NCBI GenBank assembly: GCA_001643675.2
Contig: LSRY02000003.1
Location: 868,001 to 932,000 of the forward strand
Reading direction: 5' to 3'
Length of the DNA stretch: 64,000 nt
DNA from: Monocercomonoides exilis PA203
Lineage: Eukaryota; Protista; Preaxostyla
The number at the start of each line of letters is the position of its first letter. The first letter of the stretch is position 1. The notes under the pieces were generated by a model that was given only the letters and a program-made list of their open reading frames with translations, searched no databases and was not told the DNA's origin. Below are positions 4,501 through 64,000 of this stretch, piece after piece. Position numbers and translations under genes: made by a program.

Positions 4501-5362
4501 CGCTGAAAGTCTATAAAAAGTGCATAAATTTTCAATAAAAATGCCTGAAGTGAAATATTTTCCCCCATTTGTCAAAGTTTTTTTTCATTCGTTTCATAGG
4601 AAGTTCACATTATATAAATATTCACATATTTTGCGAATAACTTTTTTAGAAATATTTCACATTAAAAAAGTGAAATGAATAAAGTCAATATTTTTGTCTC
4701 TCAAAATTTTTTGATTGAGAATTTTCTTTGAATAATGATAAATTGATACAAAGAAGTTATATTCCATTCGAAGATCATTTTTTCATAAATGTTTTCTGAA
4801 GCATCGTTATTTTAAATAATTTTCTTTTCCAATTTTTATTTTTTTAACAAAGAAACAAAATATTAAACAAATTGTTTCCTTTTAAATAATTAAACAAATA
4901 TTCATTTCAAAATCAAGCTGAGTTCTTGCATGCATTAAAAAAAACTTAATCGACATCTTGTTCCGAATTTTTTCTTTTGTTTTTTCAAAATTCATCAAAA
5001 AATTTTACACACACACACACACAAAAAAAAAAAAAAAATAATTTCAGAAATTTACTTGGAATTATTGAGTGGAACAATATTTGTAAAGCACAATATTCCT
5101 ATCAAATGGGACGATATTTTTTGCTTCATGAATTTTGTTCCACTCTGTTCTTTCAAAGATTTTTTTCGACTTCTTTATATTTTCATATTTAATATTGCAC
5201 TGGAATGTCAGAATTATAATTATGCAATTGCAGAAAAATTTTGGAACATATCATTGAATTTTTCATAAATGCGAGAATCCTGTTTCAAATAAAATATATA
5301 TTCCCATAATAATATTAAAGACAGTTTTGATACAACAAAATAATTATTTTAATAAAAAAACA

Positions 5363-24424: not shown

Positions 24425-25080
24425 GTTGGGGAAGTGGATCGCAATTATTGAAGATGTGGAAAAATGGTGAAATAAAAAATTCCTGCGCCCCATATTATTT
24501 TGATCTTTCAAAAAAAAATGTTTTGATTCAAAAAAAAACATCAATTTTGTTCGGCGAATGAGAAGGATAATGTGAATTATGAAAAAAAAGTCATATCGAT
24601 TGTGTATTAATACAGAAAAACTTATTGTAACATCAACCGAAGCCAAATTATTCCTTTTATTATAAAATTATTTCTCAAACAAATCAAATAACTCATTTAT
24701 TTTGAATGAATGATAATCGTTAAATTATAAACTGTTGATAAATCATTTCTGCGTTGCTTTTTATTTTGAACAGTTCTAAATTATAATTTAGAAAAAATAA
24801 TTTTTGTATTGAGATATTAAATATTTGTATTGAAAAAAAATTAAAATCATATGAATTATCATTGTGAAACCATAAAAGCTGTAATATTTTTTGGAATTTT
24901 CACTTTACAAAAATTTCTTATTTAAGAGTTCTTTGAAAAATCGAAAAGTCACGCTTTTATTGTTTATAAAATAAATACACATCGTATAATTGGTTTCATT
25001 TCACTTTTAACATTTTAACTTGAATCAGATTTGTAAATACTAATTTGAACAATTTCTTCCTTTCTTCTTTCCTCATCTTC

Positions 25081-28000
25081 CTAAATCCTTCGCTGAAGTT
25101 CTTTTAATTGGTTCACAAGTGCAATGAACGTTTTCATTTCCATTATCAACGCCTCATCGTTCATCCCATGGGCAATCATCAGCTTTTGAAATCCATAAGC
25201 AGCAGCCTTCATTCCATTAAATACATCGATCGAATATTCACTAGAGGAGCAGACTCGACATGATTGTAAAGAAATATCCAAACACTCTCCAAATTCTTCA
25301 TATGCTCCCTCTTTCTCAGATTTCGTTTCCTTTTTTATTTCAGAAACAATCAAACAATCTTTGTTTTTATCACTTTCATTTTCCGAATTTTTCTCCAATG
25401 CTTCAGTTTTTATAACTTCATCATCATACAGCCCCTTTTTCATTCTCTTCAACCTCAATCGGCATATTTCCTTCTTAACTGCAATCATCCCCAGAAACAC
25501 AAACGAAAACGCCAACGAAGAATTCGGAGGAGAAAAGGGTGTGCTGATTGACGTAAACACTCGATAATATGAGAAGATTTTCGAATAAGTCTCGTAAAGA
25601 TGCTGAATGCGGGTGTAGAGAGACAGAGGAGATGTGCTAAGCAACGAAGATTTCTGAAGCAGAACCCCAAACAGTTCACTGGATTTTTCGCTCGAAGAAG
25701 AAGAAGAAGACGAAGAAGACAATGAAGATGTTGTTGAACTGCTTTCACTTGCTTCGCTTTCTTCGGCCTTTTCATTGTTTTCTTCTTTTGCTCCTTCTTC
25801 TCTCTCCTTTCTCTTTTCAAAATGTTTCATTTCTTTCCTTTTCCTCCTCTTCTCCTTCGCCATTTCTTTCTTCCTCCTCTTTTCCTCTTTCTCCTCTTCC
25901 TCTTCAATGTTCATCTTAGTTAATCTCGCCATCACCCCCATCCCTTTGATTCTGACCTCGTTCTCCTTCCCAAGCCACCCATCCAACGAACCCAGCAGCT
26001 TTTCGCATTCTTTTATTGAGTCGGCAAGAGAAGTCGTCTCAAACTGGTCTGCCAGCGCATCGCACAAGTCGAGCTCATGTGCTGTGTGATAAAGCGACAG
26101 TAAGAAAGAAAGCAAGAAGGGGCCTGCAAGATATATATGACCTTGCTCATGAAGTATTGACGAAAGAAGAGAAGAAGAAGAGTAAGAGGAAATGGCAGAT
26201 GGTTCTGAGGTGACATCTCCAGCTCTCTCTTCTTCGTTCTTTTCGTCTCCGGATGCTTCATGCTCCTCTTTAGTTGCTTCAGATTTTTCTTTTCTTTGCT
26301 TATTTCTTCTTGAGTCTCTCCTATGCACCGAAGACGCTAAGTTAATTGCTTTCTGAGTGAACGGCTCGATCAACGAAAGCAAAAAATTGACGCGAGTCAC
26401 AAAAATCTCAGAAGGGGAATGCAAATGTGCACATTCCAAATGAGATGGGTCAGAAAAAGCTGAGTCTCTTTGGCTGTGCTGACTGTTCTTGAATCCTTTG
26501 CAATCATGTTCTGAGCGACTTGAGCTGTAATTATGCTGCTTGTGACTTCTCTCAAATTTTCTGTTTTCTTTTCGTTTTCTGTTCTCGACAAACAAGCTGT
26601 GTCCTTTGCCTTCGTGGCAAGGGTGGTCAATGGTCTCCGGATAGTGTGTCAATGCACGCATCACCTTCATCATCGCCCTTTTCCTCTCTTCAATCTTTAA
26701 TTCTGAGTGGCTTGAGCCGCTGGAAGAGCCATGAAAGTTGCGGTGGTTCTGATTGCGGTTCGAATATCTATCTTTTGATCCATTTTGCTTTTGACTGTAT
26801 GAATGAGAAGAAGATGATGATTGCAACGAGGAAGAGTCATGAGAAATTGTACTGTTCCTTGTTTCCAGTCCATCGTCTCCATTGAAGAAGAAGTCTTCAC
26901 TCCCCAAAGAAGAGGCAGCATTTTCAGCCACATTGCTCCATTTTTCCAGGTGTTGTAGCGGATGCAGCTGAGAAAGCTTTGAATAAACATTTGGATTCGA
27001 ACAAACGAAGGCAAAATGGCGTGTTTGCGAATGGCGATGAGGCAGAAATGGAAGATTTAAACAAGAATGAAATGAATTCATTGATGCTGTTTCATTTTCT
27101 TCGCTTTCGCTTTCATTCTCTTCGTAACCTTTGTTTTCTTTGTGATGACGATTCTTCTTTTCGGTTTTTCTTTTTTTATTTTCTTTTTTGTGAATTTCTT
27201 TTTCTTCTTCCTCTTCTTCATCTTCTTCATCTTCTTCATCTTCGTTCTCTTCATTTTCATTATCATCATCATCATCAACATTTCCTTTTTCTTTTTTGGG
27301 TTTATTCTCTTTTCCTGAGTTTTTGCCCATCCCAACAGTTTTCTCCCTCCTTTCGCAATTCCCACATTCAAGCATTTCTTCATTCGCTTCCTCATTCTCG
27401 TCATACGAGCACAAAACAAGAGGAAATCCACATGTCGGACATAGAAGCTGTGTCAGCCGCCTTTCAACTGACAGCTTCGGAAGATATTCTGGTGCTTGCT
27501 GCTGAGAAGATATGGCTATATTTGAGTCTGAAGAAGAAGAAGAAGAAGACTGAAATGAAGTCTTCTTTTCGCTGGACAACAGAACCGTCTGTGCGAATGT
27601 GACTGAAGGCTGGTGATCATCTTTCAAATCCTTTTCGGCTTGATCACTTTCTTTATCACTTTCGCCTTCGTCTTCTTCGCCTTCTTCTCCTTCCTCTTCT
27701 TCACCTTCCTCCTCATTTTCTTCTTCCTTCTCTTCGTCTTCATTTTCTTCCTCTTTATCTTCCTCGTCTTCTTCATTTTTATCCTCTTTGTATTTCTCCT
27801 TGCTCTTCTCCTCATCCGGAACAACTGTGTTTTTGATGCCCCACAACTTCCACCGCATAAACGCTTCATCTTGCCACCATCTCAACTCCTTCTCTTTCAA
27901 ATACTTGCGCTTCTTTTCTTTCTCTTCCTTTTCGTGCTCGACTTCATTTTCACAACTCTTCCCATCTTCTATTGCTTTTATTCCATCTCTCTTTTTCTCT

Positions 28001-29424
28001 TCTCTCTTTTTTTCCTTTTCTTCCTCCTCCTCCTCCTCCTCTTTTTCTTCTTCTTCCTTTCTCCATCCATTCCATCTCCTCTCCCACCACACACATCGCT
28101 CGCAGCTGCAAAGAAACCGATAATTTTGAAGAAGAACAGATCGTCTTTGTGTCTGTGACTGCTGCAGAGGCAAGTAATTTATGCAAATCTCTTCGTTCTT
28201 GTGGATAACTGATCTAATACACACAATGTGCACAGAAGGCGGCTTGTGAGATAAAACGCTCGTTTTGAAAGATGATCCAACGGAATTGCTTTTGCCTGAT
28301 TTGCTAATTTCACATCCTTTTGGTACAAATAACTTGATTTCGTCATCCGTAACCTCAACAGAAGCACAGTCCGTTTTCAGCTTTTTATTTCTTCTTTCAG
28401 CAAGCTTCGTCTCTCCATCTTCTTCAACTTCTCCTAAGTTGCACTGCATGTTTTCTTCCGTTCCTTCGACTGCTTTCCAACCAGCACTTCCGTGCATAAA
28501 TGCTGCCGCTGGAGCACAACTAGATGAATTGTTATCAAACCAATTTTTTAAAAAAAAAGATTTCAATGAATTTGTGATAGCATTAATATTTCATTTTTGA
28601 ATTTTAAGATGGATGATCAACATGTTTCAAATAATTAGAATTTAGAAAATTGAAAACAAAATGTCAAAATTGAAAAATTGAAATTATTCAAACCTGTGAT
28701 TAAGAAGGGAAGCTGATGGATTCACTGAAAATCCTTTATCAGGCCGAATGGTAAATGCATTTCGCTCGATGATGCACAGCAAGATCAAAATCAAATGCAC
28801 CAAATCACAAGTTGCAAGAAGTGATCCAGCTGTTGAGTTAGGATAATGTTGAGGAAGCAATGGAGGTGCAGCAAACAACGTTAAATACCTTGAAACATTA
28901 TCTTCAATAACACGAGCAATGAATCGCTTGTGAGTCGTGTCATTGTGGGTAAATTCATCGTATCCAGCCATTAAAAGGACATCAATAAAATGTGGTTCTT
29001 TTTGATAAACTTCTGGAGTGTAGGTTAGAACTTCGCTTCCAATATCTGGGACAGTTGGCTCATGCGCAACTTTTGATTTTTGTTCTTGATCAAGCAGCGT
29101 TAGAAGTCGGATGATCATTCTGGTATCAGCATCTGATTTAAGTCCCGTCCACTCCAAAAGAGTTGGACATTCAACTGAAGAATGCAATGTATCTGCTTTT
29201 TGGCATTCTTCTGAACAGTATCTCGCGAATTCGCATTTTTTGCAGATATATGGGGAAATTCCCTTTAGAGATTTAAAACATGTGTGACAATATTCTTTTG
29301 CATGGTGACCATAAACTACTGCGCTTATTGCTTTGCTTTCAATTATGTGCTCACCACTATGTATATCTCGTGTTGCAATAGCGAACCGTCCGAATGAAGG
29401 AGCAGAAATAATTTGTAAAGACAT
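25081..29424 (-). CDS. SMYD-family SET and MYND domain lysine methyltransferase (~1389 aa)
   Basis: GRFAIATRDI.SGE (N-SET) and MYND CHTC..CKKC..YCSEECQ..H..EC. Intron 28520-28693 rebuilds LLNHSCAP. EEICINYL and post-SET FLCSCERC follow, then a CPTC..CGNC zinc knuckle and long acidic inserts. Confidence 0.9.
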
Positions 29425-29786
29425 TTTTTTAATGGTTTCACGATTATAACGAATTATTTTTGTGTTTGCAATCTTCAACTTGTTAAAATAAAGATTATCG
29501 TTTGATTCAAGAAAATTTATTCTTTAATTTTTACCAAATAATATTCACAAATATTTCATATCGCAAATTGTTTTCTTTAAAAATAGTCCGTATTTTCGAA
29601 AATTTTAATGAGTGAATGTTTGTTTCAACCTCAAAGCGTTAAAATTTTCTTTTATTGTCGTTTCACTCTTTTTTGAAATAAAATAAAAACTTTCAAAAAA
29701 ATTGAAAAATAAATTATCATCTTTCCATTAATTATTTTATGTTCAATATTTCTATTTTTTATTTTCTGTTATAAATTGTTGTGTAT
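29425..29786. promoter_or_regulatory. Divergent intergenic region (probable bidirectional promoter)
   Basis: 362-bp AT-rich gap between the head-to-head ATGs at 29424 (-) and 29787 (+). No specific motif identified. Confidence 0.4.
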
Positions 29787-31818
29787 ATGTATTTATGCCT
29801 TCAAATAATAGGCTATTGTTTATTTATTTTAAGCTGCAATAGTAGTAGTTGCAGTTATTTACAAATTCACAGACATCAATCACCATTAATTTATCATGAT
29901 TCATTCACCATTTCACTACCAAAATGCTTTATCAATTCGAGTAAATTCAATTCATTTCATCTCCATAATGAATCGTGTATATTTATGAATAACGTCGAGA
30001 TTAAAAATTCTTCTATTCATTTAAATAATACCTGTTTGTTTTCAACGGAAACATATCCGAAAATTTCATTTGGAAGCTGTTCATTCGCTATCATTACGCA
30101 CTGTCATGTTTCAATGCTTGCGCAATTAACATTTCCTCAAAATTTTGATGGAAACGTCTTGTTGGCGAACTTGTCATTGAACTTAAGCAAAAAGAATTAC
30201 AGTCCTGTTTTTTCCAAGATTCCATTTTCATATTCTCCGAATAATTTGTCTAAAGGATCATTAGAAATTTCCTTTTCTAATTTTGAATCGTTTTCATTTA
30301 ACAATAATTTTTTATCTGTTTCACAGAAATTTTCATCAATATTCATTCATCACTGTTCAATAGACAATGTCACTTTCACTCATTCACCAAGCGAACCGAT
30401 ATGTATGATATCACATGAAATTATATGCGAATCATGCAAATTCAATTCAGTCAGAAGTGACGTTGATGGAGGAATTATGCAACGAGCTAACTTATTCTAT
30501 TCTTTTCTTTCGATTAAGAACACATCTTTTATCAGAAGCGCATGGGAAAAACCGACAACCGAAAAATCTACACAACCTCTACAGTTTCAGTGGGATGCAT
30601 CCGGAATGCTCTGCCAAAATGTGTTTTCTGACTGCGAGTGGCTGAAAGCAAGCTCACATGACTATGCCACCGTCTCCTGTTTGAATGAGCATCAGTCGTT
30701 GCAAGTTGCACGGTGTGTGTTTGTCCACTGTAGCGGGTGCACAGGCGGCGCTGTTCTTTCTTCTCATTCATGCAAAGTGAGCATCCAAAGAAGCAACTTC
30801 ACAAACTGCTCGACTTACTCAGGATGCGGTGGGGCGCTTCAGATTTTCTGTTCAAAAAGTCAAGGAGCCGCTGTCGAATACTGTAAATTCACTGAAAATG
30901 TAGCTTCTTCTTCTTCTTCCTCTTCTGCTCCTTCTTCGCTATCTTCATTTTCGCCATCGTCGTCATCTTCTTCAAGTTCATCCTCTTTCTATCATTCTGG
31001 TTCTCATTGTTCACTTTCTTCATCTCTTTCTTCATCTGATGCAGGCGCTGTTTATTTAAGTTTTTGTCCTCCTCCTTCTTCTTCTTCCCTTTCCCCTTCT
31101 CTATCTTCTTCTCCTTTTCACTCATATTCCACCCAAATCATCAGCTCCTGCAGTTTCAGCAACAACACAGCTTCAAACTCAGCCGGTGCTTTGCTTGTGA
31201 ATTGTCACCCTTCGACTTCGGATTCCTTCGATTCTTGTTTTTCTCTTAGAAACACCATCTTTTATGGCAATACGGCTAATGGAACAAAGCAAGGTGAAGG
31301 CGGAGGAGGGGTCTATTGCAGCATAGTAAAGCAGATAAGAAGACAAATGCCGATGTTTTTCTTCTGCTCATTTGAGAAGAACAAAGCGATATCTGGTTGT
31401 GGAGACGATGTGCTAATTGAAGGCGCATGTGAAAGGGAAGAATGGTGCAGATTGTTTGTGCCTAACGAAAAAGGAAGAATAAGATTGCATCAGAACAAGA
31501 ATGAGACTAAAAGGAAGTGCGAAGAAGTTGTTTTTGTTGCAGATAAAGACAAAAGCGAAAGAGTTGTAGAAGAAGTTGAAGAAGCAGATGAAAATCATTC
31601 AAAGTTATCATCGCCATCAACATCTACTTCTTCACATAATCGACCAAACAAAATCCACGATTTTGATACCTCTAAGAGAAGAAAAACCAACTCTGGGCCT
31701 TTTCCTGAGATCATCACGCTTCTTGTGCCAAACGAAGAGCTTCGAGCGAACCCTGATTCAGCTACTAATATCTGCAGCGCTCCTTCCTCACTCTCATTTT
31801 TGAATAAACCTTCTTCTT

Positions 31819-31850
<32 letters not shown>

Positions 31851-34800
31851 CCCTCCCCTATCTCCATCCCAGCCTCCCCCACCATCTTCATCCACTCACT
31901 TGTTGTGTGTGTTGATGGTGCCAATCCGCAGCTCACTTCTCTCTCAACACACAAGGCACAAAGCGAAGAATCCTTCATTGTTGACTCAGGCGCTTTGCTT
32001 CTCGTCTCTCTTCGGGTGTTTCTGTCTTCGCAGCATCCGCTCGCACCTCCGTTTGTTGCACTGGCGGAAGGAATGTCGTGTTCTTATCCTGTTCAGTTGT
32101 CTAAAAGAGATAAAACGGCTAATAAAGAAGGAAGAATTGAATATCATAAGTCATCTTTTAATAAATCAGCTTCTAGTTCATCCTCATCCTCATCCTCATT
32201 TTCTTCTTCTACTTCTTCTCCTTCTTCTTCCTCTTCCTCTTCCTCTGAGTTCCACCCTCACCTCGCCTCCTTCGAGTCTGTCTCTCTTGCATTTCCGCTG
32301 GACTGCTACTACAATTCTTCCCTGGTCACTCCTCTGTCCTTTGCCGGCCTCACCTCCAGCACAAAATACAAATCTCCACTCGAAATGATCGAAGCTCACT
32401 CGCATCCCATTCTCATCTGCGATGGCCTGGAAATAGCAACAGAAGAAGTCGCCTTGTCTGCTTTTGCTGTAGTTTCGTGTGGGTCGATTGTGATGGACAA
32501 TTGTTTGGTGAATGTTTCTCTACAAAATACGGCGTTTATATGCTGCTATCAGGGGTATCAGGGTGTTCCAAGTTCAAATGAATGTATCACGAAAGGAGTG
32601 AAAAATCAGAAAAATTCCAATGTTCAATCTGTTTCTACCTCTGTTGTGTATTCTGTTGAGATTGAAGGATGCAAATTTGAGCAGATTAGCTGCTCAGATG
32701 AACACGAAGATTCCACTTTGATTACAATTAGAGCACATACATACTATCCAATCGCAAATGACTGCCCTCCTTCTACTGTTAGCAATTCAGTCTTGTCAAC
32801 TGAAAGAAAAGGGCATATCGATGATGAAAGCTTCGTTTTGAATACAGCTCATCTTTCAAACTCTTCTTCTTCTGTTGTCAACGCTTCTTCAACTGCATCA
32901 TCATCTCCTTCTTCTTCTTCTTCTTCATCTTCTTCCAATCATTCTCTACCTTCAACCTCTTTTTCCTTCACTTCTTCCTCCCGTCCCATTCTCTCCTGTT
33001 CCGTAGACTATCCCCCCTCTTTCTGCTACTCATTCCTTCCTTCCCATCTCTCTTTCTTCGCCTCCAACTCCACATTCGCTCAACTCCGCAGCCACTATGC
33101 CTTTCTCGGCGGGGTCTGTGCTTTGTGGCTGGATGCCGGTGATATTCTCAGTGTAAACAACTGTTCTTTCTCTGAATGCCAATGCTCGATGGTTGGTGGG
33201 CCGTATCAGGACATGTGGGGATACGGTGGTGTGATGTTTCTGGGGTGTATCGAAGAAGATGGAGGAGGAAGTGTGATTGAGCGAAATTCGAATTCAGATA
33301 AAAAAGCAAAATTTTACAATGAGAAGGATTATGAACATGAATTGATTCAAGGAAAGGAACGCTCAAATGGAGAAGAAAAAAACAAAAAATCGTCTTCTTC
33401 TTCTTCTTCTTCTTTGAATTCTGTTGCGTATTTTATACCAAACATCCAATTTCGAAGTGTCATCTTCTCAGGCAACATGGCTACTATCGGTAATGACATC
33501 TTCATATTCTGCGAATCCGTTTCACAGCAGCTCAATTCCAATCAATTTGAACTGATTATGAACCCATCAGTTTTTGACTTCCAATCTTCAATGGCGGCTT
33601 TTGAGAGGAATGGAGTGTTTGGTGGTGATGGTGCGCCTGATGGAAGCGGAGAAGACGAGAGAGAGGCAGTTGATTTGGTGCAGCTGATTCTGTTTTTTGA
33701 ATGGCCAGTGGTTTACGTGGACAGCAATGGAGGTGTTGATGGAGGGATTTGTGGTCTTTTGGAGAGTCCGTGCAGAACGCTGAATGAAGCGCTGACGCAT
33801 CTGACGTGTGAAGAGGAGTATTGTAAGGAGATAGAGAGAACCGAAGAGAGCAGGGGAAATGGAGGAAGCAGCAAAGAGAAAGGGAAAGAAAAAGGGAATA
33901 AGAAGATTGGAAGGGAAAAGAAGGAGGACTGGAATAAATGTGTGAGAGGTGAATGTGATGGAGCAAGAAGAAAAGAAATGGAAAATACTGTTGCCGAATT
34001 TTCGTCCTGTATGATGACGTTGTATATATCTGATTATTGTTCTGTTGAGCATCCATTTGAAATGAAAGGGATAACAATTACGTCAAATCCGACTATTCCT
34101 CCATCTTCATCGTCATCGTCATCTTCATCTTCTTCAGCAAGTGCTTATGCAAAGAATAAAAATGTTCGAAAAAGCAATCAAAATAAAGAAATTGAGCAAT
34201 CAAATTCGGTTTCTTCTTCAAAAATCCTCATTCAGCCAGTCACGATCGAGCCACAAGCACAAAGGGAGATGATTATTTCAGCCTCAGGGCAATGCTTGAT
34301 TTCTAACATTGACATCAAAATCAACTTTTCTTCTGTGTCTTCGTTTGAGAACTTGATCTGTTACAATTCAGATGGACTGTTTCAAATGTCAGATGTGTCA
34401 ATCACTGAAGCAGAAGCGAATAATCAGCAACGAACAGTTTCTGCTCCGCTTATGCACATTTCTTCTAAACGTGCTGATTCTTTTCCATCTTCCTCTTCTC
34501 CATCTTCTTTATCTTCTTTTTCTGTGACTTCGTCATCTTTCTCTTCCTCCCTTCAATCTCAAAACTATGCCCGATCAGTCTTCTACACAGGATTTCTGCT
34601 CAAAATCACATCCGGAAGTGCTTCCTTTGAGCGAGTGGTCTTTTCGAACATAAAATGTGTCCATGTTCTGATTGCATCGTCTTCTGCTTCTCTTTCATTT
34701 GCTGGCTGCACTCTCAATCTCAGCTGTTTGTACGAAGGATTAACTGAAAATACACAATTATTGAATTCTTATGAAAAGGTTTATTCTTCTTCTTCTTCCC

Positions 34801-37800
34801 CTTCTTTTATGTTGACTTCTCTATCTTCTTCTTCTTCGATTCTTTCGATGCATTCGATTGTGATTGAAGATACAAACGACGTTCAGATTGACAACTGCTC
34901 TTTCATTGGAACATCTTCACAACTTTCGATGAGTTCTTCACAGTTTTCTTCCTCTTCGTCCATTTCTTCATCTTTTCCTTCTTCATTAAATTGTTTCTCT
35001 TTCACCTCCTCTTCAACATCCGACTCGTTTTCCTGCAGCTGGAACGCCTCTCTTCTCCTCCTTCACAAGTCCTCTGCGTCCATCACGAACTCTTTCTTCA
35101 GTCATTCTGCTGCCGGCGCATTGGAAGTGCGCAATTCTTCTCTTCGCATCGAAAATGACTCCTTCATCGGCAATGCGCCTTCAAAAGACGAGCAATTTGT
35201 TCTTTCCGGAGGCAGAAATTACAGTTTCACACAAAATTATCCTTCTCTCCGCAGAAACATCAAATGCTCTGGCGGCAGTGCTCTGAATGTGGAAAGCATC
35301 AATGTTGAGGAAGAAGAAGAAAAAGAAAAAGAAAAAGTGACAAGCAGCTCTTCTCTTTGGATACTCGACGAAGGCTGCACTTTCAGTGGAGTGGAAGCAG
35401 AGCTTGCTTCGTCGTATTTTGTACCTTTTCTGTCAAATGTGACTGCAACTGAAGCGGAAGACGGGCTGATCTTGCTTTTTGCGGGATCTTTGCTTGTTCC
35501 ATGTAATCTCTCTTTTGAAGTCAGCTATGCTCATCACGATGATCGTGATGGTGATGATGATTATGATGTAATGACAGAAAGATACGAATTCACGAAATTT
35601 GTGTCTGAAACCAGTGCAGAAGGGTTTGTGCCTTCCTCTTCGTCGATTCTGACATCGCTGAAAGAGCACGCATCAGTCAAGGCAACAAAGGAAGATGATA
35701 AGGAGGAGGAATCACTTGATTTGGCTGACTTATCTTCTTCTTCTTCTTTTCGTTCGTTTTCTTCTTCTTCCTCATTTTCCTCCTCTTCTTCCTCTCCTTT
35801 GCCATTTCGAAGAACATTCCGTAAATCAGTTGCAACCGCCCATGTTTCTCTTCTCTTTGGCGATCGCTCTTTTCCAGACAAATCAGTTCCAGTTGCCCTT
35901 CAACTCGCACAAACACGCAAACTTGCTAAGCAAACGTTGATATTCGTCATCTGCAGTTCAATCATTTTTGTTCTGATTTTAGCAGCCATTTTGATTTTGT
36001 CCATTGTTATACTGCGAAGGCGGAAGAAACAGAGCCGAACAGTCGAAGTGATAATAAGCAGAGAAGCAATTTCTTCTTCTTCTTCTTCTTCTCCCTCTCC
36101 TTCTGCTTCTTCTCCTGCTTTGTCTTTAACTCTTTCTTATTCAGCGGGCAAAATGCTCAGCCGCTCTTATTCTGCACCAATTCTATCAGCAAAGCCAGTC
36201 AGCTTGCTCACACGCTCTCAGTCAGCAAATGCGAAACTGACTTCTTTGAGATCTTCTTCTTCCTCTTCCTATTCTTCTTCTTCTTCTTCTTCTAATTCGA
36301 ATTATAATTCTGCTTCTGCTGCAGCTTCTGTTTATGCCTACATCTTCTCCCCTTCTTCCTCTCTTAAACAGCTCAGTAACACCACACTTTCGCCTGCCGG
36401 CAAAACCGAAGTGAACGAGCCGCTTTCTGCAGGCACCAACTCTTCTTCACCTTTCTCGCAGCGGCTGTATCCTCTTCAGTACTTCAGCGCCAATGTCTCT
36501 CTGGACACCCCTTCTTCCTCTTCACATTCACACACAAACACTCACTCACATTCACATTCACATTCACAATCTCATTCGCAATCGCAATCTCGCTCCCACT
36601 CCCACTCTCACTCCCACTCCCACTCAACTCTTCCTCTCCCTCCTCCCCCGCCTCCTCTCTTCTCCTCTCTGAACTTCTCCAATCCGAGTGTCCAAGGCAA
36701 GCCGATGTTCCAGCTGCTACCCATCTTCACCAGCAGCGCACTTCAAAGCGACGAGTTTGAGAACAGCTGCTCAGTCCAGTTCGAAGACGCACGCACATTC
36801 CACTCCCACAGCTTCTGCCCTGATGAACGCTTGTCCACCATCCCTGTGTCTCTCGGGGCTTCTTCTATGACTCCTCTTTCAACATCTTCTTCTGCTGCTA
36901 CTTATGCTTATGCTTCTTCCACTTCGCCGGAGCAACCTCTTTCTTCGCTTGCTTCATCTAATTCACGGCCGCCTGATTATAAACCTTCTCCTCTTCCTCT
37001 TCCTCTTTATTCTTCTTCTCCTTCTCCTGCTCGTTCTCTTCCTCTTCCTCCACCTTCAAACAAGCCAGTAATTTTCCCTGTTACACCTTTGCTGTTTGAC
37101 CCAGCTTGCGAAAGCACTCAAATCACACCTCTGACAACTGCAACAACTTGCACTTCTTCATCTGCCTCTTCTTCTCCATCTCTTTCACAATCACCTTCTC
37201 CTTCTCCTTCAGCTGTTTCACCATCTTCGACATCATCTTCTACCTCCGTACGATCATCATCATCTTCTTCTTCTTCTTCTTTGGATTCATCTTCTCTAAC
37301 AAGCCCCAAACGCAATCGGCATCTACCCAGATCACGCACCCACTCCCATTCTCATTACCATCACACATCCATTTGCACAACACCACGAAAAGCACAAAGA
37401 ACACAAACAATTCAAAAGACACAGAAAACTCAAAAACCACAAAGCCGCAATGAACACAAAGAGCATTCTGTTTCATTCCCTTTGTATGCAACAACGTCCA
37501 TTTCACAAGCAGCGCATTCGCCCGAGCACGATCCAGAGCACGTCAGCCAGCCGTCTCCCTCTGCAGCCTCAAACATCCATCTTTCGTCGTGCAATTTCTC
37601 CTTCCGTGTTCCGTCGACATTCACATCTTTCCCTTCGAACTTCAATTCACTCGCGCCTTCTCCTTCGGCTTCTGTTCCCAGTTTGTCTGCGGCCGAGGAG
37701 TCTGACTCAATCGACTGTTCATCGTCTTCGTTTGCTGCCTCGTCGCTGGATGTTCATTGTCAAATGGCTGACAACCACGGAACAAACAAAAACGGAGTTA

Positions 37801-38024
37801 AAACCGTTCGGTCGCTGCCACGTGGAAGAATACGGTCTTGTTCGGTTGCTTCTTCGAATTTGTCCTCCTCAACTTCTTCAATTCTGTCTTCTGTTTCATC
37901 ATCATCATCTTCTTCTTCTTCTTCTTCTTCTGAATCATCATCATCAACTTCGCAATCTTCGTCTTCTTCTTCTTCAACAGCATCAGCATCTTCTTCTTCT
38001 TCTTCTTCTTCTTCGACAACTTAG
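29787..38024 (+). CDS. Large single-pass beta-helix surface protein (~2745 aa) with Ser/Pro/His-rich disordered tail
   Basis: Hydrophobic N-terminus, GGA/F..N repeats and DGGICGLLESPCRT module. Shares YPSLRRNI.CS, LWI.DEGC.F.G and LL.PCNLSF blocks with the 15338-24424 protein. TM LIFVICSSIIFVLILAAILILSIVIL followed by RRRKK. Confidence 0.85.
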
Positions 38025-55045: not shown

Positions 55046-58000
55046 ATGTTTCAATCAGCAGAGTTAATAGAATTGAAAAAGATATCTGCAACATTTCTTT
55101 CAATTCCACCGGATTTTTCTATAGAAATAATTCCAAGCATATCTTCATACGATCCTTTCGATTATTTTTTATCAGAGCCTTCGTGCATGAATTTATATCT
55201 GACTCTGCTTGAGGGATATGATTCTGTACTTGTTTCAAATGATCCCCCTCCATATGAACTTTTGGAATTGAACAAACGATATGAACCAAAAATATCTCTT
55301 TTCATCACAAAAACAAAGCAAATTTCTCTTACAAAAGATAAGATATTTAAAAACGTACAGATAATGCGTTTTGCTTCATCTGAATTAACACTTCTTCACG
55401 AATACCTTGAGCATTTTGGAAAATTTTCTCTTGATGCATTTGACCAACAAACTCAGAATACCCTTCTTTCAGAAAAATCAACGCTTGACCAAACAAAATT
55501 GAGATATTACAAAGCGTTACGGACAAAACTTCAGAAAGATACAGATATTTTCATTCAAGAACTTGAAGATGAAGCTGCAAGAATGACAGTTTACTCTTTT
55601 TAATTTTTGAAAGATTAATTTTGAAGCTGGTACATTTATTTTTCTCGAAAATCTTTTAGGGAAATGCAACGGCGCTATTTCGTCCCGAGAATTTCACAAC
55701 AGAAAGGGCAGCCCAAGTCTTAGAAGAGCAATTCCACAGTCTCGAAGAGTTGTTGATTCCGCCTTCGGATGCATTTTTCAACCGAATGCCCAACACTCTT
55801 GCGTACATAGAGTTCTGGGCAAAGCGTGCAGATGCGCTGTACCAGACGAAGGAGAACATGAAGTATCTTCTGAAGCAGAAGATGTTTCCCTCCAGGCGCG
55901 TGAAGCTGCTTCAGATGATCCACGCAGCAGGAAAGGAATACACAGCAGCAGCAACCAATGAGCGCTGTCTGTCGCTCCTTTTGCCTCAGATGAAGGCGTT
56001 CGCTTCGGCGCCGGCTGCGCTGTTCGGACAGTCTCTGGCCTCTCTCCACGCGTTCCTGAAGCTGATTATTTCTGCTGGCGAGAACACAAAAGGAGTCGTC
56101 AGGATCATCCCATTGCTTCCGCTCATTTTGCAGGACTTCATTTCGAAAGGGAAAGCGCACGTTTTGTTTGGAGGCGGTGGCGGAGGAAATTTCGACAAAA
56201 GAAGCGAAAGCAACTTGGCGGGAATGAGGGCAGAGGATAGCGAAGAAAGAAGAGATATGCACAACATGAGTGAAATGAAGGACTTTCGCAATGAATTTAC
56301 TTCATCGACTGCTGCACAGTCATCGCGAAGGAATTCCTTTTCCGACCCGTTTTCCTCGCCTTCCTTTTTTCCATCTGGCTGGTCGGCTCCTGAAACATCA
56401 TATATGTCATCATCATCTTCTTCTTCTTCGTATTCTTCTTCGCCTTCATATTCAAATTCATCGCTATCTCCTTCTGCAACATTATCGTCACCGTCTTCCT
56501 CATCTGCACTGTTAAACGAAGCAGCACATAACTCGACTTCTTTGCCAAGCCATTCTTCCTCTTCAGCAACTTCGTCAAATTTTCACCTTGAACCTTCCTA
56601 TTCTCACATGAATGCTTCGCTTTCATCCCTTTTAAAGCCATCTTTTTCTTCTTCTTCTTTTCCCGCTCCATCTCCTTCTACAAGCAAATCCTCGTTTTAT
56701 AATCATTCTCTTTCTTCTTCTCCTTCATCATCATCATCTTCTTCTTCCTCGATATCTTCTTCTTCTTCATCTTCTTCTTCCATCCTTCTTCGCATCCTCA
56801 ACACGATAGAATCCTCCAAAATCCTCAAAGAATCCATGCTCCTCTACCTCCAGCACACTCTCTCCTCTTCCTCCTTCCCTCACTTAGACTTGCTCTCTTT
56901 ATTCCAGCCACTCGAAGCCTTCATCGACCAATGCCGTGCAGTCGCTCTCCTGCACGACATGAGCACATTCGTGTCACATTTGCACGAGTTCCGCATCGGC
57001 GGCGCAAACGGGCGGGCCGCCGAGGAGCAGCTGCGGCAGATCCAGCAGCAGTTCATGTGTTTTGTCGAGTCTGTTGCAAATGATCTGCCAAACGTCTACA
57101 CCTCTGCCCACTCGTCGGCGAGGCTGAGGTCGATCTATTTGGTCTTCGAGGACACGGCAAATTCGATCGGTCAGGTGATTCTGACAGCGTTCGAAGGGCT
57201 GACGTCGCTGCAGGACATCATCTCATTACTCGCCATGATTGAGCTCAGACTGGACTACCCGAACGTGCTGATGGCGATTTTGAAGAAGATGGGGCTGATT
57301 TTCTCATTCATCGACAGAACAAGTCTGAAGATCGTGCAGGCTTACAGGCGTGTCGTGAGAGGGGTGCGAATACTTCCTTGGGCTATCCCGCTGTTCAATC
57401 AAATTCTGGCATTGAGGCAGCTGCTGTCTCAAGTTGACATTATGCTCTTCTTCTTTGAGATGGCACTTGATTTTGCAGCGCTCAGAGAGAAGAACGGTAT
57501 GTCTTCTGCTCAAAGACTGAACGCAATTGAAAGAATGCTCTCAAACTCGTCGTCTACTTCCTCACTGTCCTCCTCCGCTGTGCAGCCTTCTCCTTCTTTT
57601 CAGTCACAAACATATCAGTCATCTCGCAAACAGACACCAAACATTTCAAACATTTCAAACATATCATCCATATCATCTTCATTTCAGACACAACCTTTTT
57701 CATCATCCTCCTCCTCCTCATATTCTTCTTCTTCATCTTTATTTCCCCCTTCATCTCAATTCTCTCTTTCCACCAACACTCTTTCCTCTATCTCCACCCT
57801 CGCCTCCTCCGCAGCCACTCTCCAGTCCTTCGCCTCGCTCGTCACTGAATGGAACGCCGAAGTCACCTCCCGCCGCCAAAAGCTCCTCAAATTCCGCAAC
57901 GTTCTTGTTGCTTCCTTAGCCACCCGCAGAAACACGTGGCTCTCTCACATCGAACTGCAGCGTGCTGACCAGTTCCAGCAGCCCTGCTTCTCCCAAGCAC

Positions 58001-61000
58001 AGCCAGGGCACCCGGAATCCCTCTCTATCCCGCTCAGAGAGCATCTTTCCCTCGTCCGCTTGCTCCGCATCTCCAGAGGCTTCAACATCGTCATCTCGCG
58101 CCAGTCTGCCGCCAACCTCGCCCAGCTGCAGCGCCTGCTGATGCACCGGCAGTTCCTCGACTACTTCCTCAGCGAATACAAAAACTTCTGCCTCAAATGC
58201 AAGCCGCTCTATCAGAAGATGCTCAGCCGCAAGCTCTCTGTTGTGGAGCGCAATGTGCAGCGAGGGATTTCTCAAGTCACGTGGCAGTCCGCCGAGCTCG
58301 CCCGCTTCTCAGACAGCTGCCTCGAGTCGCTGGCAGAGCTGAAGAAGGACGTGCAGATTCTGAAGACAAACCGCGCGATTCTGAAAGGCGAGGTGGATGC
58401 GCTGGCTGCAGCGCTCGTGTTTGAGCTGCCGCGCGTCTTGCAGAAGGAGGAGGAATTTATGGCGTATATGGAGCGGGTGATGGCAAGCCGGCTGGACGAT
58501 CTGAAGGTGTTCAACGAGCGGCTTAAAAGGCTCACACAGAACATGCGCCCGGAGATGCTCCGCGCGCAGTTCGATCCAGACGGCATGGAAGAGTTCTTCT
58601 CCCGCTTCGATGCGAAGAAGATGCGGGTAACACAGAGATTTGCCGTCGAGACGCTGAAGCACGTACTTGCAAGGATCAGATCTGATGTGCCTTTAATTGA
58701 GCTTCCACTGACGATTTCAAAGGGAAAGCTGAATCTGCAGCTGAAAAGCAGCAAGCGTCTTTTACTGTCTTCTCGGTTTGCAACACCTTATTCCTCTTCA
58801 ACTGCCTTTTTTTCCGGTGGAGCACGACATGACGGAGATAGAGAACACAACAGACGCAACACCATCACTTCCACTCTAAGTTCACTGGAGCTTGAGAGAA
58901 TCGACGAGGCAATGCCAGAAAACGAGGGGAATACTGAAGGAAACAATTTAAGGAATTCAGATAAAGAAGAAAGACAAAGGAGAAACATTTACGAGGCAGA
59001 TGCACGCGAAGCAGAGAGAAATAATGGAAGCAGTAGCAACGGCAACGGCGGAGGGAGAGGAAACAACGAGATCCATCTGGTGGAGTTGTTTGACGGGCTG
59101 ATGAACTTCCTGTCCGAAATCACCGACAATGAAGAGATTGAAGAAGCGAATCAGATTGCTTCGCAGCTGTCGTCTGAGCTGATTGCATCAGAAAGGCTGT
59201 GCAATCAGTTCACCGAGAAAATGATTGTCGAATACGCCGAGCTTTGGACAAACACCTCGCAGGAGCGATTTGACAGGTTTCTGACAATTCCCGTCGTTGC
59301 TGTGAATGATGAGCCGACAGTGCCACATATCCCACCTTCGTTTGAGGAGCTGAGCGTGATCAGCACACATTTGAGTGTTGAGAAGGAGAAGTGGAATGAG
59401 AAAAACCAAATTAAAGTCGATTCTATTTCTTTGCCTTTCCTAAAGATCAAAAGTTCGCGTTATTCAAAGCAATCAACAAAGAATCCACTTGCAATGGCTC
59501 CATTAACAAACCAGTCAAATACATCTTTTATTCCTGCTTATTCAACCACATCTCTGCAAACAACTTCCTCTTCTGCTTCTGCATCACAATCTGCTTCTTC
59601 TTCCTCTTCTTCCTCTTCTTCCTCTTCTTCTTCTGCATATTCCATATCTTCATCAACCTCATCTCCATTAGGCAAAATGAATTCATTTTCCGTTCCTGCC
59701 TCAAGTGCAGGATCCAAACACCCCCCAAAACAATCAGATAGCACAGCCAACCCGCCTCTTCGCGAGTGGCTGGAGCACATCGACGCCATCAAGGAGACCA
59801 ACGACAGCATCACCAACCTTCCGCACCACATCTCGCTGGGATGGATCTGCGTAAACACCGTCACGTTCAAACGGGACATCCTCACTCGCTCGACGAAGTG
59901 GGGGCTGCCGTTCACCCAGTTTCTGATTGACGGAATTGAAAAGTCGACTGCAGAAGGCTCAAAGACACTGACGACCATTCGGTACAACTTCGACCTCACA
60001 TTCACTCACTTGACTACGATGCAGAAGATTGAGGTGATCAATGCAACGAGGAAGGCCACTGACGATGCTCCTGCTTTTGATTTGTTCTTTCAGAAGCTGC
60101 ACACTCGGCTGATGCATCTGGAGCGTTCGCTATCTGTCTGCCCGCACGAAGTGACTGCACACATTGCGAATTTTGAGAGGCAGTGGAAGACGTTCAAACA
60201 GAGTCAAGTGAAGGCATATCTTGACCACATCCAGCTTATGGAAAGGGAAGTGCTGAATGAAATATCACAGAGAGAGATCACTGCAAACGAAAAGATACAA
60301 ACACTCATTCAGATTTTGAGTGATCCTTCACAAACACCTCTGCATTCCACTACTGATTCGCTTCTTGCACTGAGTCAGATGGAAGCACTGGAATCAATGG
60401 TTGTGCAATTAGAAGGAAGAATAGATGAAATCATTGCGCTGCGGGCGAAGTTTAACAAACAAGGTAGTGAAAAACGTCCAGTGGCCATTCAGAGCTATCG
60501 GATGTTTATCAGCGCCCTCACAACTCTCTGGGAAGTGATGTTTTCGATGCGACAGTCTCTTGACGAAGGGCTGTTTTTAATGACGTGGGGAGAGTTGCTG
60601 GCATACCCAGCACAGGCAAACTACTTCGAAAAGGCGGATGAAGCAATCGATGGAATAAGAGAACAACTGAAGTCTGTTGAAGCGTATCAGTTGTTCAGCA
60701 AGCAGCTTGTTGGATACTCGAAATCGTGGAAGATTATCAATGCCATCCGCATCTCTCCAATGCAACGATGCCACTGGGAGGAGATGTTCCAGCAAATGGG
60801 GCTTCCGGACAACAAGGTGACAGAATATGTGGAAGGTGCTGTTGATGGTTCATTGCAGCTGTCTGTACTTTTTGATATATGCACTGAAGCAGTTCAGCCA
60901 GCAATTATGAAAGTGCTGGAGAAGTGCAGAAAACAGGCTGATCTCAAAGAGCAGATTGATGAAATTTTGTCGCGCTGGAATCGGATGCAGCTTCCATTCA

Positions 61001-64000
61001 CGGCAGAGTCGATGGCTGCCATGGCTTCTTATTATGCTGAGGTAGAAGACACTTCTGCATCTATTTCAATGTCATCTGCAATATCTCCAGGCAGAGAAGG
61101 AGAACTTGCCCGCGATAAACGCAAAGGAAAAGTGAGGAAAAAAGGTGCTAAAAAAGGAACGACACGCAACAGATGCCCGTTTCCAGTTGTCATCATGGAC
61201 CAATGCTCATCTCTCATTGCGCAATCAATTGCAGATTTTCATGTTTTGGCAAAGTTGTCTCTTTGCGAATATTCAAACGATGTTAGCGACGAACTGGGAG
61301 AGGCACAAGAGATGGTCACACGAGTGTCCAACTTCCTATACAATTTATTCAAAATGCACAAGTTGACTACACAGTTGCGATCAGGAATAAGATACGGTAT
61401 TTTTTCTGAAGGAGATGCATCCACCTGCAACCTGCTTGACAGAATGTCTGAGTTGGCAATGCAAATCAGGCCGATCGTCAGCACAGGCGATCCAGAAATT
61501 GGCGCAACGACGCGTATATTTCATTCTCTGTTTGATGAGATCCATTCCATCTTTGCTGAATCTCCTAACCTTCGAGGCAAAGAAATCGCATCTCAAAAGC
61601 CAAGATTCCTTGCTTTGACTGCAAGTGAGCTGATATCATACACATCATCATTTGTCGATTTCACTGTCAAATGTGTTATTCCACCAGAGATCCTTAATCG
61701 TTTTCTTCCCGGAGCACGCTCACTTGACATAGAGACATCTGAAGACGGACAGTCTCTTGTCGTAACAACTCTCACATGCACAACTGGAGAAAAGCTTTTG
61801 TTCACAGAAGACCCGCTCATCCTCAGCTCTGACATCTGGGCACTGCCAGAGCAGCTGTTTGCAACGACTTCTGTGATTATTCAAAAGCAAATTTCACTCG
61901 CTGTGGCATCGCTTAATCAGTTCAACTCATTTTTCGACTGGTTTACATCTCTTCTCATGCAGTACAATGATGTTGAGAGCTATCCGCTTCAAATTCAGGT
62001 ATTTGGGCTTACGATTCGGGTGTGGTACACAACACAATTATTGAAAGTGATCAAAGACATTCAAGAAGAGAACTGGGAAGATGTTACAAAGGACTTCACA
62101 CAGTTTCATCTGACAAACCACCGATGCCTCGCTTTTCTGATGACTCTGCAAAGAACAATCCAGCCATTTGATTCGCAGAGATTGTTTGTGACTCAACTCA
62201 TTGATTCAGTTGTGTCCGACGAAAAAGAACAGGATGTCTCTTCAAAAGAAGGCGCTGTGGAAGGTTCGTTAAATGCAGACGACGAAGAAGCTACTGCGGG
62301 TGATGGAATCAACAAACGATCCTCTCCACAAAGAGTTCTCAGAGTGTTTAGTGGCATTTCTACTCCAGCTTCATCCGAACAGATGGACGACACAACAACA
62401 GATGCTCAGAGCAGTTCAAGTAGAGATCACACAGAAGCGAAAAGTGAGAGCAAGTCAGGCAAAAGCTCCTCAAGACAACAATATGGTCAGAAGCACATGA
62501 GTGATGATGATGAAGATGATGAACAGATTTTTGAAGGTTTTGATGATTCTACACAGAACTCGGAGTACGATGAAGATGATATATCTGGCAGATCAGATAA
62601 CGATGTTGACGATGCAAGTGAAGAAAGGCACAACTCTTCAGTTGTTGGAAGCTCTTTCATGAAGCGTAAAAACGCTCAAATAGAGCTTTTCAGAACACTC
62701 GTAAAGAGACTTATCTATCTATTTTTTCTATTCTGTCTTTACGATATCGATCACTTGCGTCTTATCAAAGCTTCAGGCATCCCTCTCTCAAGAGATATTC
62801 ACACAACACATATATTCACTAATTATACAGGAGCAACATTTAACGAATCACATAGCGAGTTCAAGCCATCCGACCTAAACAACTCGCAAAAATCACTTGT
62901 AACAACATTGTCCAATAGACTTTTGTTCACATTTGACGAAGCTCAACAGAACATCTTGCTGACAGCAGCAAATACAGATCTCACACTGGATCAGAACGAC
63001 GAACGGCAGAAGTTGTGGTATGGACTTGAGTGGATCCCTTCCACAAAGGCACTACAGACGCTTCCTATTGTGTGGCCTACACAGCAGTGGAAAGACCAGT
63101 TAGTCGCCCTCACGTTTGATGCGAACCGGCCAGGCGCGACTAACAGCGGGCCTCTTGTGGTTGTCAAAGATGCACAGTATTCTCTGTGCATGGCGCACCT
63201 CAGAGACATCTCCACGCTGACGGGACACAATTTGAGGTCGTTTGAGTGCACGCCTGGAACGGACATCAACTCCATCAAGCGCTTTCTGCTTTCGATGTTT
63301 GTTGACTCCAGATTCATTGTCTTCAGCGGAATCGAGCTGTTGACTCCGTTTGTGAGGAGATCATTGGTTGATTTTCTGAAGCAGCTTTGGGACTGGCGCC
63401 GCTGCCAGGAATCGTCGCAGCCTGGTTTCGCACAGCTGAGTCTCGAAGGCCTCAGCGTTACAATTTCTGTGCCGCTTGGGAACTTTGTGGTGATTGGTGT
63501 GTATGTGTCGGAAACATCTCTCCAAAATTCACTTCCTGACGGAATCGATTCTGTTATGATGCCGATGATGATGCCAGACTTTCAAAAGAGTGATTGGCTG
63601 GCGCCTCTTTTTGCTGCGCAAGGTTTTGTGAGCTTTGCAAGTCTGTCTTTGAAAACTGACTCTTATCTTGATGCACTGAAAGAATTGCTTCTGTACGAAT
63701 TCAAAGAATCGAACGATCAAATTAATGCAAAGCTCTCTTCGTTAAGCTTTCTGGAAAGCATCACACAGTTGGCTGGTGATCGCCACAGAACATTGATTCA
63801 CTCAACTGCTGCGGCACATGGTGACAGAGGAAAGATTTACGAACGAACTTTAGCTTTTCCATTTGAATCTCACAAGCAAAGCTTTTTCATGGAGATTCAG
63901 TATTTAGAGGAGCTGACATGCCACGATGCACTGTGGGAAATAAGCGAGCAACTTTTCAGCATTTTAGCCCCACTTTCACTCATTGACCCAACGCATTCAT
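55046..64000 (+). CDS. Highly divergent dynein heavy chain-like protein, 5' part (>2900 aa, runs off the window); degenerate AAA1
   Basis: Exon 1 is 55046-55588, followed by phase-0 intron 55589-55659. The frame from 55660 was open wherever spot-checked through 64000. Tail motifs EFWAKR and LPHHISLGWICVN..K..W, linker MQRCHW..KQADLKEQIDEILSRW, and AAA1 scaffold YGLEW, FEC..D, LPD and GF..LSLK occur in dynein order. Confidence 0.82.

Follow-up and report, generated by a model that had tools for sequence, protein, structure and literature searches.

Locus and gene model

We analysed a 64,000-nt stretch of the Monocercomonoides exilis genome (C25:868001-932000; hereafter the window, with positions counted from its first base) and read the next 27 kb to follow a frame that runs off its end. 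The locus at the end of the window is best explained, judging from its sequence, as the 5′ third of an M. exilis gene that is intact and kept by selection, and that codes for a giant dynein heavy chain which has lost the catalytic motifs of AAA1. In the probable gene model a small exon 1 and an intron of 71 nt precede a single exon of 23,982 nt, and the product would have ~8,175 residues, roughly 0.9 MDa. Residues (aa) are numbered from the first codon of exon 2, and the features of the gene model in the window are as follows.

55046-55588, forward strand: tentative exon 1, with an ATG start and 181 codons, ending in ..EDEAARMT exactly at GT
55589-55659, forward strand: predicted intron of 71 nt, GT..AG (gtttac...ttttag), phase 0, with the exon 2 frame following in phase
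55660-64000, forward strand: window part of exon 2, 2,780 codons, stop-free in a six-frame scan
56287-56850, forward strand: in the tail, the largest of the Ser-rich insertions of low complexity (aa 210-397), with low alignment coverage among paralogues

The first-pass annotation, made from the letters of the window, had described an uninterrupted 8.3-kb exon. The six-frame scan confirmed that it is stop-free and showed that 8.3 kb is only the window's share of a 24-kb exon, whose frame continues for 15.6 kb past the window end to C25:947641 (window-equivalent 79641) and totals 7,994 codons. Over these 23,982 nt there are 0 stops in the exon's own frame and 254-380 in each of the other frames. 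The frame had been missing from the open reading frame (ORF) track used for that annotation because ORFs running off the stretch are omitted there. Ser-rich low-complexity sequence makes up ~18% of the protein, and 14.9% of all residues are Ser.

The start of exon 2 agrees with that of two paralogues, C50 and C1, whose open frames begin at the homologous Gly codon, and in the public model of the C50 gene (P0002) an exon 1 of 68 aa is followed by an intron that lies at the site homologous to the predicted 71-nt intron. Exons 1 and 2 were searched separately. No similarity was detectable between exon 1 and the N-termini of the paralogues, so that exon 1 is placed only by splice logic and the conserved intron site. 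We keep it tentative because it is far more AT-rich than exon 2, with a GC content of 32% (23% at third codon positions) against 51% over the opening 600 nt of exon 2. This step is unusually sharp for exons of one gene.

Dynein architecture outside AAA1

Pfam searches of the translation from 55660 found both DHC_N1 (aa 733-883, 57856-58308; E 4.5e-13, 49.1 bits against a cut-off of 28.3) and DHC_N2 (aa 1617-1783, 60508-61008; E 3.5e-11, 43.1 bits against a cut-off of 31.9). Just past the window end several P-loop families match one spot, followed by Dynein_AAA_lid. A canonical dynein profile made from 18 full-length chains (C58 of M. exilis and 17 full-length dyneins) gave eight colinear matches to the 7,994-residue ORF, running from the tail to AAA6.

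aa 706-1784 (57775-61011), forward strand: tail to linker, E 3.5e-20
aa 2012-2148 (61693-62103), forward strand: linker end, E 2.4e-4
aa 2516-2677, forward strand: AAA1, E 4.3e-3
aa 2836-2905, forward strand: AAA2 P-loop, E 1.6e-11
aa 3004-3262, forward strand: rest of AAA2 and its lid, E 1.7e-6
aa 4192-4565, forward strand: stalk and microtubule region, E 7.5e-15
aa 6497-6674, forward strand: AAA6 start, E 2.2e-9
aa 6926-7184, forward strand: AAA6 and lid, E 1e-4

The linker-end match covers profile nodes 1491-1611, which correspond to C58 aa 1708-1867, the end of DHC_N2. Profile-profile comparison with hhalign added AAA3-lid/AAA4 at 94% probability, so the AAA modules seen in dynein order are AAA1, the AAA2 P-loop and lid, AAA3-lid/AAA4, and the AAA6 start and lid, with AAA5 not detected; aa 3262-4192 and 4565-6497 (~2,900 residues) can be interpreted only in part. 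The protein is thus a dynein heavy chain by descent, in which the order of tail, linker, AAA1, AAA2, AAA3/AAA4, stalk with microtubule-binding domain (MTBD) and AAA6 is kept. The landmarks of tail, linker and AAA1 that had been read by eye in this order are borne out by the two Pfam families and the colinear profile matches. Ser-rich and other insertions have made this scaffold almost double its usual length.

The stalk was modelled with AlphaFold2 from a 5-sequence alignment. In the model (predicted local distance difference test, pLDDT, 75) two helices of ~90-100 residues, 41-140 and 272-362, lie around six short helices, which is the dynein pattern of coiled coil 1, MTBD and coiled coil 2 as far as a predicted fold can tell. 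Its Foldseek matches are dynein heavy chains only (E 5e-8), and the stalk and MTBD are kept at normal length. For the tail, the top match among solved structures in the PDB is the Chlamydomonas outer-arm beta chain, of the two-headed axonemal type (E 1.9e-10), which hints at an axonemal two-headed dynein as the ancestor of the protein.

AAA1: fold kept, catalytic motifs gone

AAA1 is recognisable as a module, and its motifs are lost.

63022-63759, forward strand: degenerate AAA1 module (aa 2455-2700), with the AAA+ alpha/beta fold kept and the catalytic motifs lost
63148-63192, forward strand: lost Walker A site, spanning both registers given by HMMER, hmmalign and profile-profile alignment
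63322-63342, forward strand: lost Walker B site, FSGIELL opposite FDEFNRI, with Asp-Glu replaced by Ser-Gly
63490-63561, forward strand: lost sensor-1, with VIGVYVSETSL opposite ITMNPGYAGR, and degenerate LPDNLKALFR box, which reads LPDGIDSVMM

The profile-profile match to AAA1 has a probability of 98.7% over 233 columns (hhalign, E 3.8e-16). An AlphaFold2 model of AAA1-AAA2, again from a 5-sequence alignment, has a pLDDT of 60-87 over AAA1 and matches dynein motors in Foldseek at E 1e-15. To place the motifs, we used a hidden Markov model (HMM) made from 11 canonical M. exilis AAA1 modules, which aligns kdlakal..vvfnC on RDISTLTGHNLRSFEC and cfdefnri on VFSGIELL.

In the first-pass annotation, RDISTLTG..RSFEC served as the anchor and Walker A, canonically GPAGTGKT, was read as DAQYSLCM. 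HMMER, a PDB profile search and hmmalign all anchor RDISTLTG..RSFEC on KDLAKAL..VFNC, and counting back from this anchor gives DAQYSLCM (63169-63192) at the GPAGTGKT position. Searched against PDB sequences, a profile of the five paralogues gives an AAA1 match that begins directly after the P-loop of solved dyneins. Profile-profile alignment instead sets GPLVVVKD (63148-63171), 7 residues upstream, opposite GPAGTGKT and adds a 7-residue insert. None of the paralogues conserves the Lys found in this register (GPCLMTED, GPMLAVEE, GPLLIADE, GPLLVIHE), and both registers lack the glycine-rich loop as well as the Lys-Thr pair. In the AlphaFold2 model the strand GPLVVV leads almost straight into a helix, with no P-loop. 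The loss of the motif thus holds whichever register is used, and the exact register first proposed has HMMER, the PDB profile search and hmmalign behind it and the profile-profile alignment against it.

Both the replacement of Walker B FDEFNRI by FSGIELL at 63322-63342 and that of FITMNPGYAGR..LPDNLKALFR by VIGVYVSETSL..LPDGIDSVMM, as first described, were recovered by HMMER, hmmalign and profile-profile alignment alike. The catalytic Glu of Walker B is missing in all five M. exilis paralogues, and the sensor-1 Asn is gone, the aligned residues being V/Y. The dead AAA1 core, aa 2501-2600, is the best-conserved 100-residue block of the whole protein among the five paralogues.

AAA2 and other nucleotide sites

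A motif scan of all 7,994 residues found no GxxxxGK[ST]. The sole surviving P-loop is GPTGSGKA (aa 2878, ~300 nt past the window end), which HMMER and the PDB profile both align to AAA2, and which carries Ala in place of the Mg-coordinating Ser/Thr. An intact AAA1 with a GPAGTGKT-type motif further downstream had been considered as a candidate that would overturn the motor-dead reading of AAA1; it is ruled out, since the one downstream P-loop belongs to AAA2. The Walker B Asp position of AAA2 is Gln (WIVIQ), and the AAA4 P-loop position reads IDTDGVLM in the profile-profile alignment. Across the protein no AAA3 or AAA4 P-loop was found, and the AAA3 P-loop region cannot be aligned. Looking beyond the window for AAA2-4, the stalk and the MTBD, as had been proposed, therefore recovered AAA2, AAA3-lid/AAA4 and the stalk/MTBD, with the AAA3 P-loop region as the part that did not come out.

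Hydrolysis at AAA1 is known to be needed for motility in all dyneins studied. With the AAA1 and AAA4 sites lost and the AAA2 P-loop degraded, an ATP-driven power-stroke cycle would be impossible, and the protein appears unable to perform a power stroke.

Paralogues, relatives and phylogeny

Scans of the M. exilis genome with DHC_N2 and AAA_6 returned ~17 canonical heavy chains, with frames of 4,185-5,320 codons, and at least 14 giant, divergent heavy-chain-like frames of 5,634-13,776 codons. The close paralogues of the C25 gene are C50, C16, C5 and C1 (31-40% identity), with open frames of 7,081-9,015 codons. Each has a single P-loop, located at AAA2 and kept as GKT or GKS. At this protein identity synonymous sites are saturated. 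Public labels were read for two paralogues: MONOS_11199 is given as 'dynein haevy chain, unidentified' and MONOS_8071 as an uncharacterized or hypothetical protein. The public model of the latter (P0001; C16:468429-491120, reverse strand) has 4,993 aa where the genomic open frame has 7,564 codons, and its last 30 residues lie outside the C16 frame; the model looks truncated or mis-spliced.

An exhaustive profile search of 1.84 billion representatives gave only 18 proteins at E<=1e-10: nine long proteins from M. exilis and Blattamonas nauphoetae, seven short metagenome/Logan fragments, a Saccoglossus ciliary beta-chain fragment and a 4,262-aa dynein. The B. nauphoetae relatives number seven (P0003-P0009), and six of them have exactly one P-loop-like motif, with none in P0008; that of P0003, GPTGAGKA, resembles the GPTGSGKA of the C25 gene.

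One further relative is Logan contig L042 (run SRR8661007; 11,356 nt, GC 29%), which scores 847 bits against the HMM of the clade. Only with TAA and TAG as sense codons does it stay open over 3,785 codons, with 194 TAA, 39 TAG and 0 TGA in frame. Prokaryote-style gene calls on this contig are fragments of 43-101 aa, because the frame needs TAA and TAG as sense. Such a code is known for the oxymonad Streblomastix, which may point to the kind of organism. AAA1 is dead here likewise (GPLVSVND.., LLTGLELL), and the AAA2 P-loop is GPPGCGKT. By its predicted product, L042 is a third lineage carrying a member of the clade.

The phylogeny of dyneins that had been suggested was built, and C25, C50, C16, C5, C1 and Blattamonas P0003-P0009 form a separate clade with 100% support on a long stem, apart from the canonical chains. 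All five M. exilis paralogues and L042 are without the AAA1 motifs, as are those Blattamonas relatives in which AAA1 can be aligned. As dead AAA1 is common to M. exilis, Blattamonas and L042, the loss of AAA1 catalysis would be old and the proteins would have been kept since. Among the 1.84 billion representatives the predicted motor-dead clade has so far been found only in oxymonads.

The other M. exilis giants (6,360-13,776 codons) differ from the C25 subfamily in forming separate clades with long stems. In Group B among them (C45, C56, C69, C41 and C14) the AAA1 P-loop and Walker B are missing too, and C45, C56, C69 and C41 make up a second dead-AAA1 clade in the tree. The divergent M. exilis heavy chains also include a graded AAA1 series: C43:190429 keeps all motifs, C10:186536 (9,622 codons) has lost sensor-1 but still has Walker A and B, C91:84704 keeps Walker A only, and C30:85738 has a degenerate GPEMHGKR. 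Judging from the sequences, AAA1 seems to have decayed step by step among the paralogues.

Maintenance of the gene

It had been proposed that the gene is a selectively maintained non-motor heavy chain, and the data agree with this. We consider it maintained because the 24-kb frame is intact, the four paralogues are open, relatives in Blattamonas and L042 share the erased AAA1, and the AAA1 remnant is the best-conserved part of the protein. The check for stops that was to reveal a pseudogene found 0 in 7,994 codons. Conservation of this kind demonstrates long-term purifying selection on the predicted protein.

Proposed role and alternatives

We think it likely that this non-motor dynein gene encodes a microtubule-attached strut, cross-bridge or scaffold that is independent of nucleotide or at most binds it. 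The tail, of the axonemal two-headed type, would anchor the protein, and the stalk would reach the microtubule; the protein would probably sit in the flagellar apparatus or in the microtubular skeleton of oxymonads (axostyle or preaxostyle). Regulation had been named beside scaffolding and cross-bridging when a role in the axoneme or axostyle was first suggested, and at that level of generality we infer the same from the predicted protein. More tentatively, it is possible that oxymonads converted duplicated axonemal heavy chains into giant (0.8-1.5 MDa) ATP-independent microtubule cross-bridges that build or stiffen the axostyle, preaxostyle and pelta. If true, this would be a conversion of a motor into a structural microtubule-associated protein on a scale undescribed for any cytoskeletal motor family.

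Several observations weigh against the strut model. AAA2 may bind nucleotide and allow some nucleotide-dependent switching. Microtubule binding is deduced from homology and the predicted fold, and conservation of the stalk region among the paralogues is moderate (identity fraction 0.20-0.25). AAA5 and the C-terminal domain were undetected by sequence, hhalign included. Finally, the Foldseek alignments of both the AAA1-AAA2 and the stalk model have low TM-scores and large root-mean-square deviations, because both models are elongated or multi-domain.

The main rival of the strut model is a regulator of other heavy chains, in which a locked, non-motile chain like DNAHX would use its tail to pair with active axonemal chains and inhibit them for transport or assembly. 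As DNAHX and DNHD1 demonstrate, a heavy chain whose AAA1 is non-catalytic can serve ciliary assembly or regulation (PMC11785096). The tail is nearest to two-headed axonemal tails, which are dimerisation platforms, and the conserved AAA1 remnant could be a surface for protein contacts. However, at least five clade paralogues and about nine more giant divergent frames are many for a chaperone-like role, and the stalk/MTBD has normal length here whereas the DNAHX stalk has insertions that impair microtubule binding (PMC11785096). We regard a regulator as unlikely.

More improbable still is that the protein works as an ATP-driven mechanoenzyme by way of a non-canonical site, which would be AAA2 or one that escaped recognition in the AAA3-AAA5 region. 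AAA2 does retain GPTGSGKA, with GKT or GKS in the paralogues, and the ~2,900 only partly interpretable residues leave room for such a site. Yet the C25 copy has Ala for the Mg-coordinating Ser/Thr of the AAA2 P-loop and Gln at the Walker B Asp position, AAA4 reads IDTDGVLM at its P-loop position, there is no other P-loop in the 7,994 residues, and the established need for AAA1 hydrolysis in dynein motility stands against it as well. Least credible of all, to the point where we give it next to no weight, is that the locus is a 'ghost gene' in decay, a pseudogene that died recently, or an open frame due to chance or artefact. The catalytic motifs are indeed lost, and this long protein contains much low-complexity sequence, but the frame has no stop where ~340 are expected from the other frames, its blocks are conserved with paralogues at 31-40% identity that are all open, and relatives occur in Blattamonas and in a lineage whose genetic code is reassigned, so that stop counts together with conserved paralogues and orthologues rule out a pseudogene.

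Comparison with known dyneins

In domain order and tail profile the C25 protein is most like the canonical two-headed axonemal chains (outer-arm beta or I1-type). It differs from the canonical chains of M. exilis in length (~8,000 residues against ~4,200-5,300), in lacking AAA1 Walker A and B, sensor-1 and the AAA3/AAA4 P-loops, and in its unrecognisable AAA5 and C-terminal domain.

Non-motile dyneins are already an established concept, with DNHD1 and DNAHX as examples. DNHD1 is a divergent but functional vertebrate 'orphan' heavy chain with a non-catalytic AAA1 and disordered insertions (PMC11785096; PMC5100056), and lacks the catalytic residues of Walker B (PMC11785096); dynein 'orphans' and 'ghost genes' were discussed by Kollmar 2016 (PMC5100056). 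The C25 protein additionally lacks the whole P-loop and is nearly twice as long. DNHD1 had been offered as a comparison at the outset. As an analogy this stands, both proteins being divergent with a non-catalytic AAA1 (PMC11785096); for orthology the profile search of 1.84 billion representatives gave no evidence, and the tree contained no DNHD1.

DNAHX (dynein-X) of sea urchin sperm belongs to a subfamily that is non-motile throughout, with poorly conserved AAA1 motifs and several insertions; it descends from the outer-arm alpha chain, with its origin within animals, and protists are reported to lack it (PMC11785096). The subfamily is marked by an AAA4 PS2i insertion and an ATP-locked AAA1. 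It binds ATP at AAA1, where the Walker A Thr is replaced by Val and Walker B is present (PMC11785096), whereas the C25 protein keeps neither the P-loop nor the acidic pair of Walker B. We take its likeness to DNAHX as that of a functional analogue only.

The paper on the genome of M. exilis reports only a nearly complete canonical set of axonemal dyneins (PMC6759080), and in the literature on oxymonad, Preaxostyla or Blattamonas dynein we found no description of these proteins. As predicted from sequence, the clade differs from the known non-motile heavy chains in its restriction to oxymonads, its near-double length, the complete erasure of motifs as against partial change, and its large expansion in one genome. 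As a rule, dynein heavy chains rank with the most conserved proteins of eukaryotes, and the AAA1 site is regarded as indispensable. Here a whole clade would have kept the ~4,000-residue dynein scaffold, doubled by insertions and without hydrolytic sites, across oxymonad lineages and a change of genetic code, which would add an independent protist case to the two non-motile dyneins of animals, DNHD1 and DNAHX. The clade also supplies candidate proteins for the inter-microtubule bridges of oxymonad cytoskeletons, which have long been known, though not in molecular terms.

Neighbouring frames and other loci

Outside the dynein survey, C51:347535-352035 is the locus of an open frame of 7,931 codons. 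It carries P-loops of the GETGTGKT type, matches AAA_6 only weakly and DHC_N2 not at all, and may resemble midasin/Rea1 rather than dynein. The window itself contains four other long stop-free frames.

5801-10498, forward strand: stop-free frame of 1,566 codons
15341-24667, reverse strand: stop-free frame of 3,109 codons
25084-28590, reverse strand: stop-free frame of 1,169 codons
29775-38021, forward strand: stop-free frame of 2,749 codons

The frames at 5801-10498, 25084-28590 and 29775-38021 match no Pfam family at E<=0.001. In the frame at 15341-24667, aa 2958-3056 match a protein kinase (PK_Tyr_Ser-Thr, 1.5e-9) and the remaining ~2,900 residues are without a Pfam match. Giant uninterrupted genes of unassigned function thus seem to be common in the region of the window.

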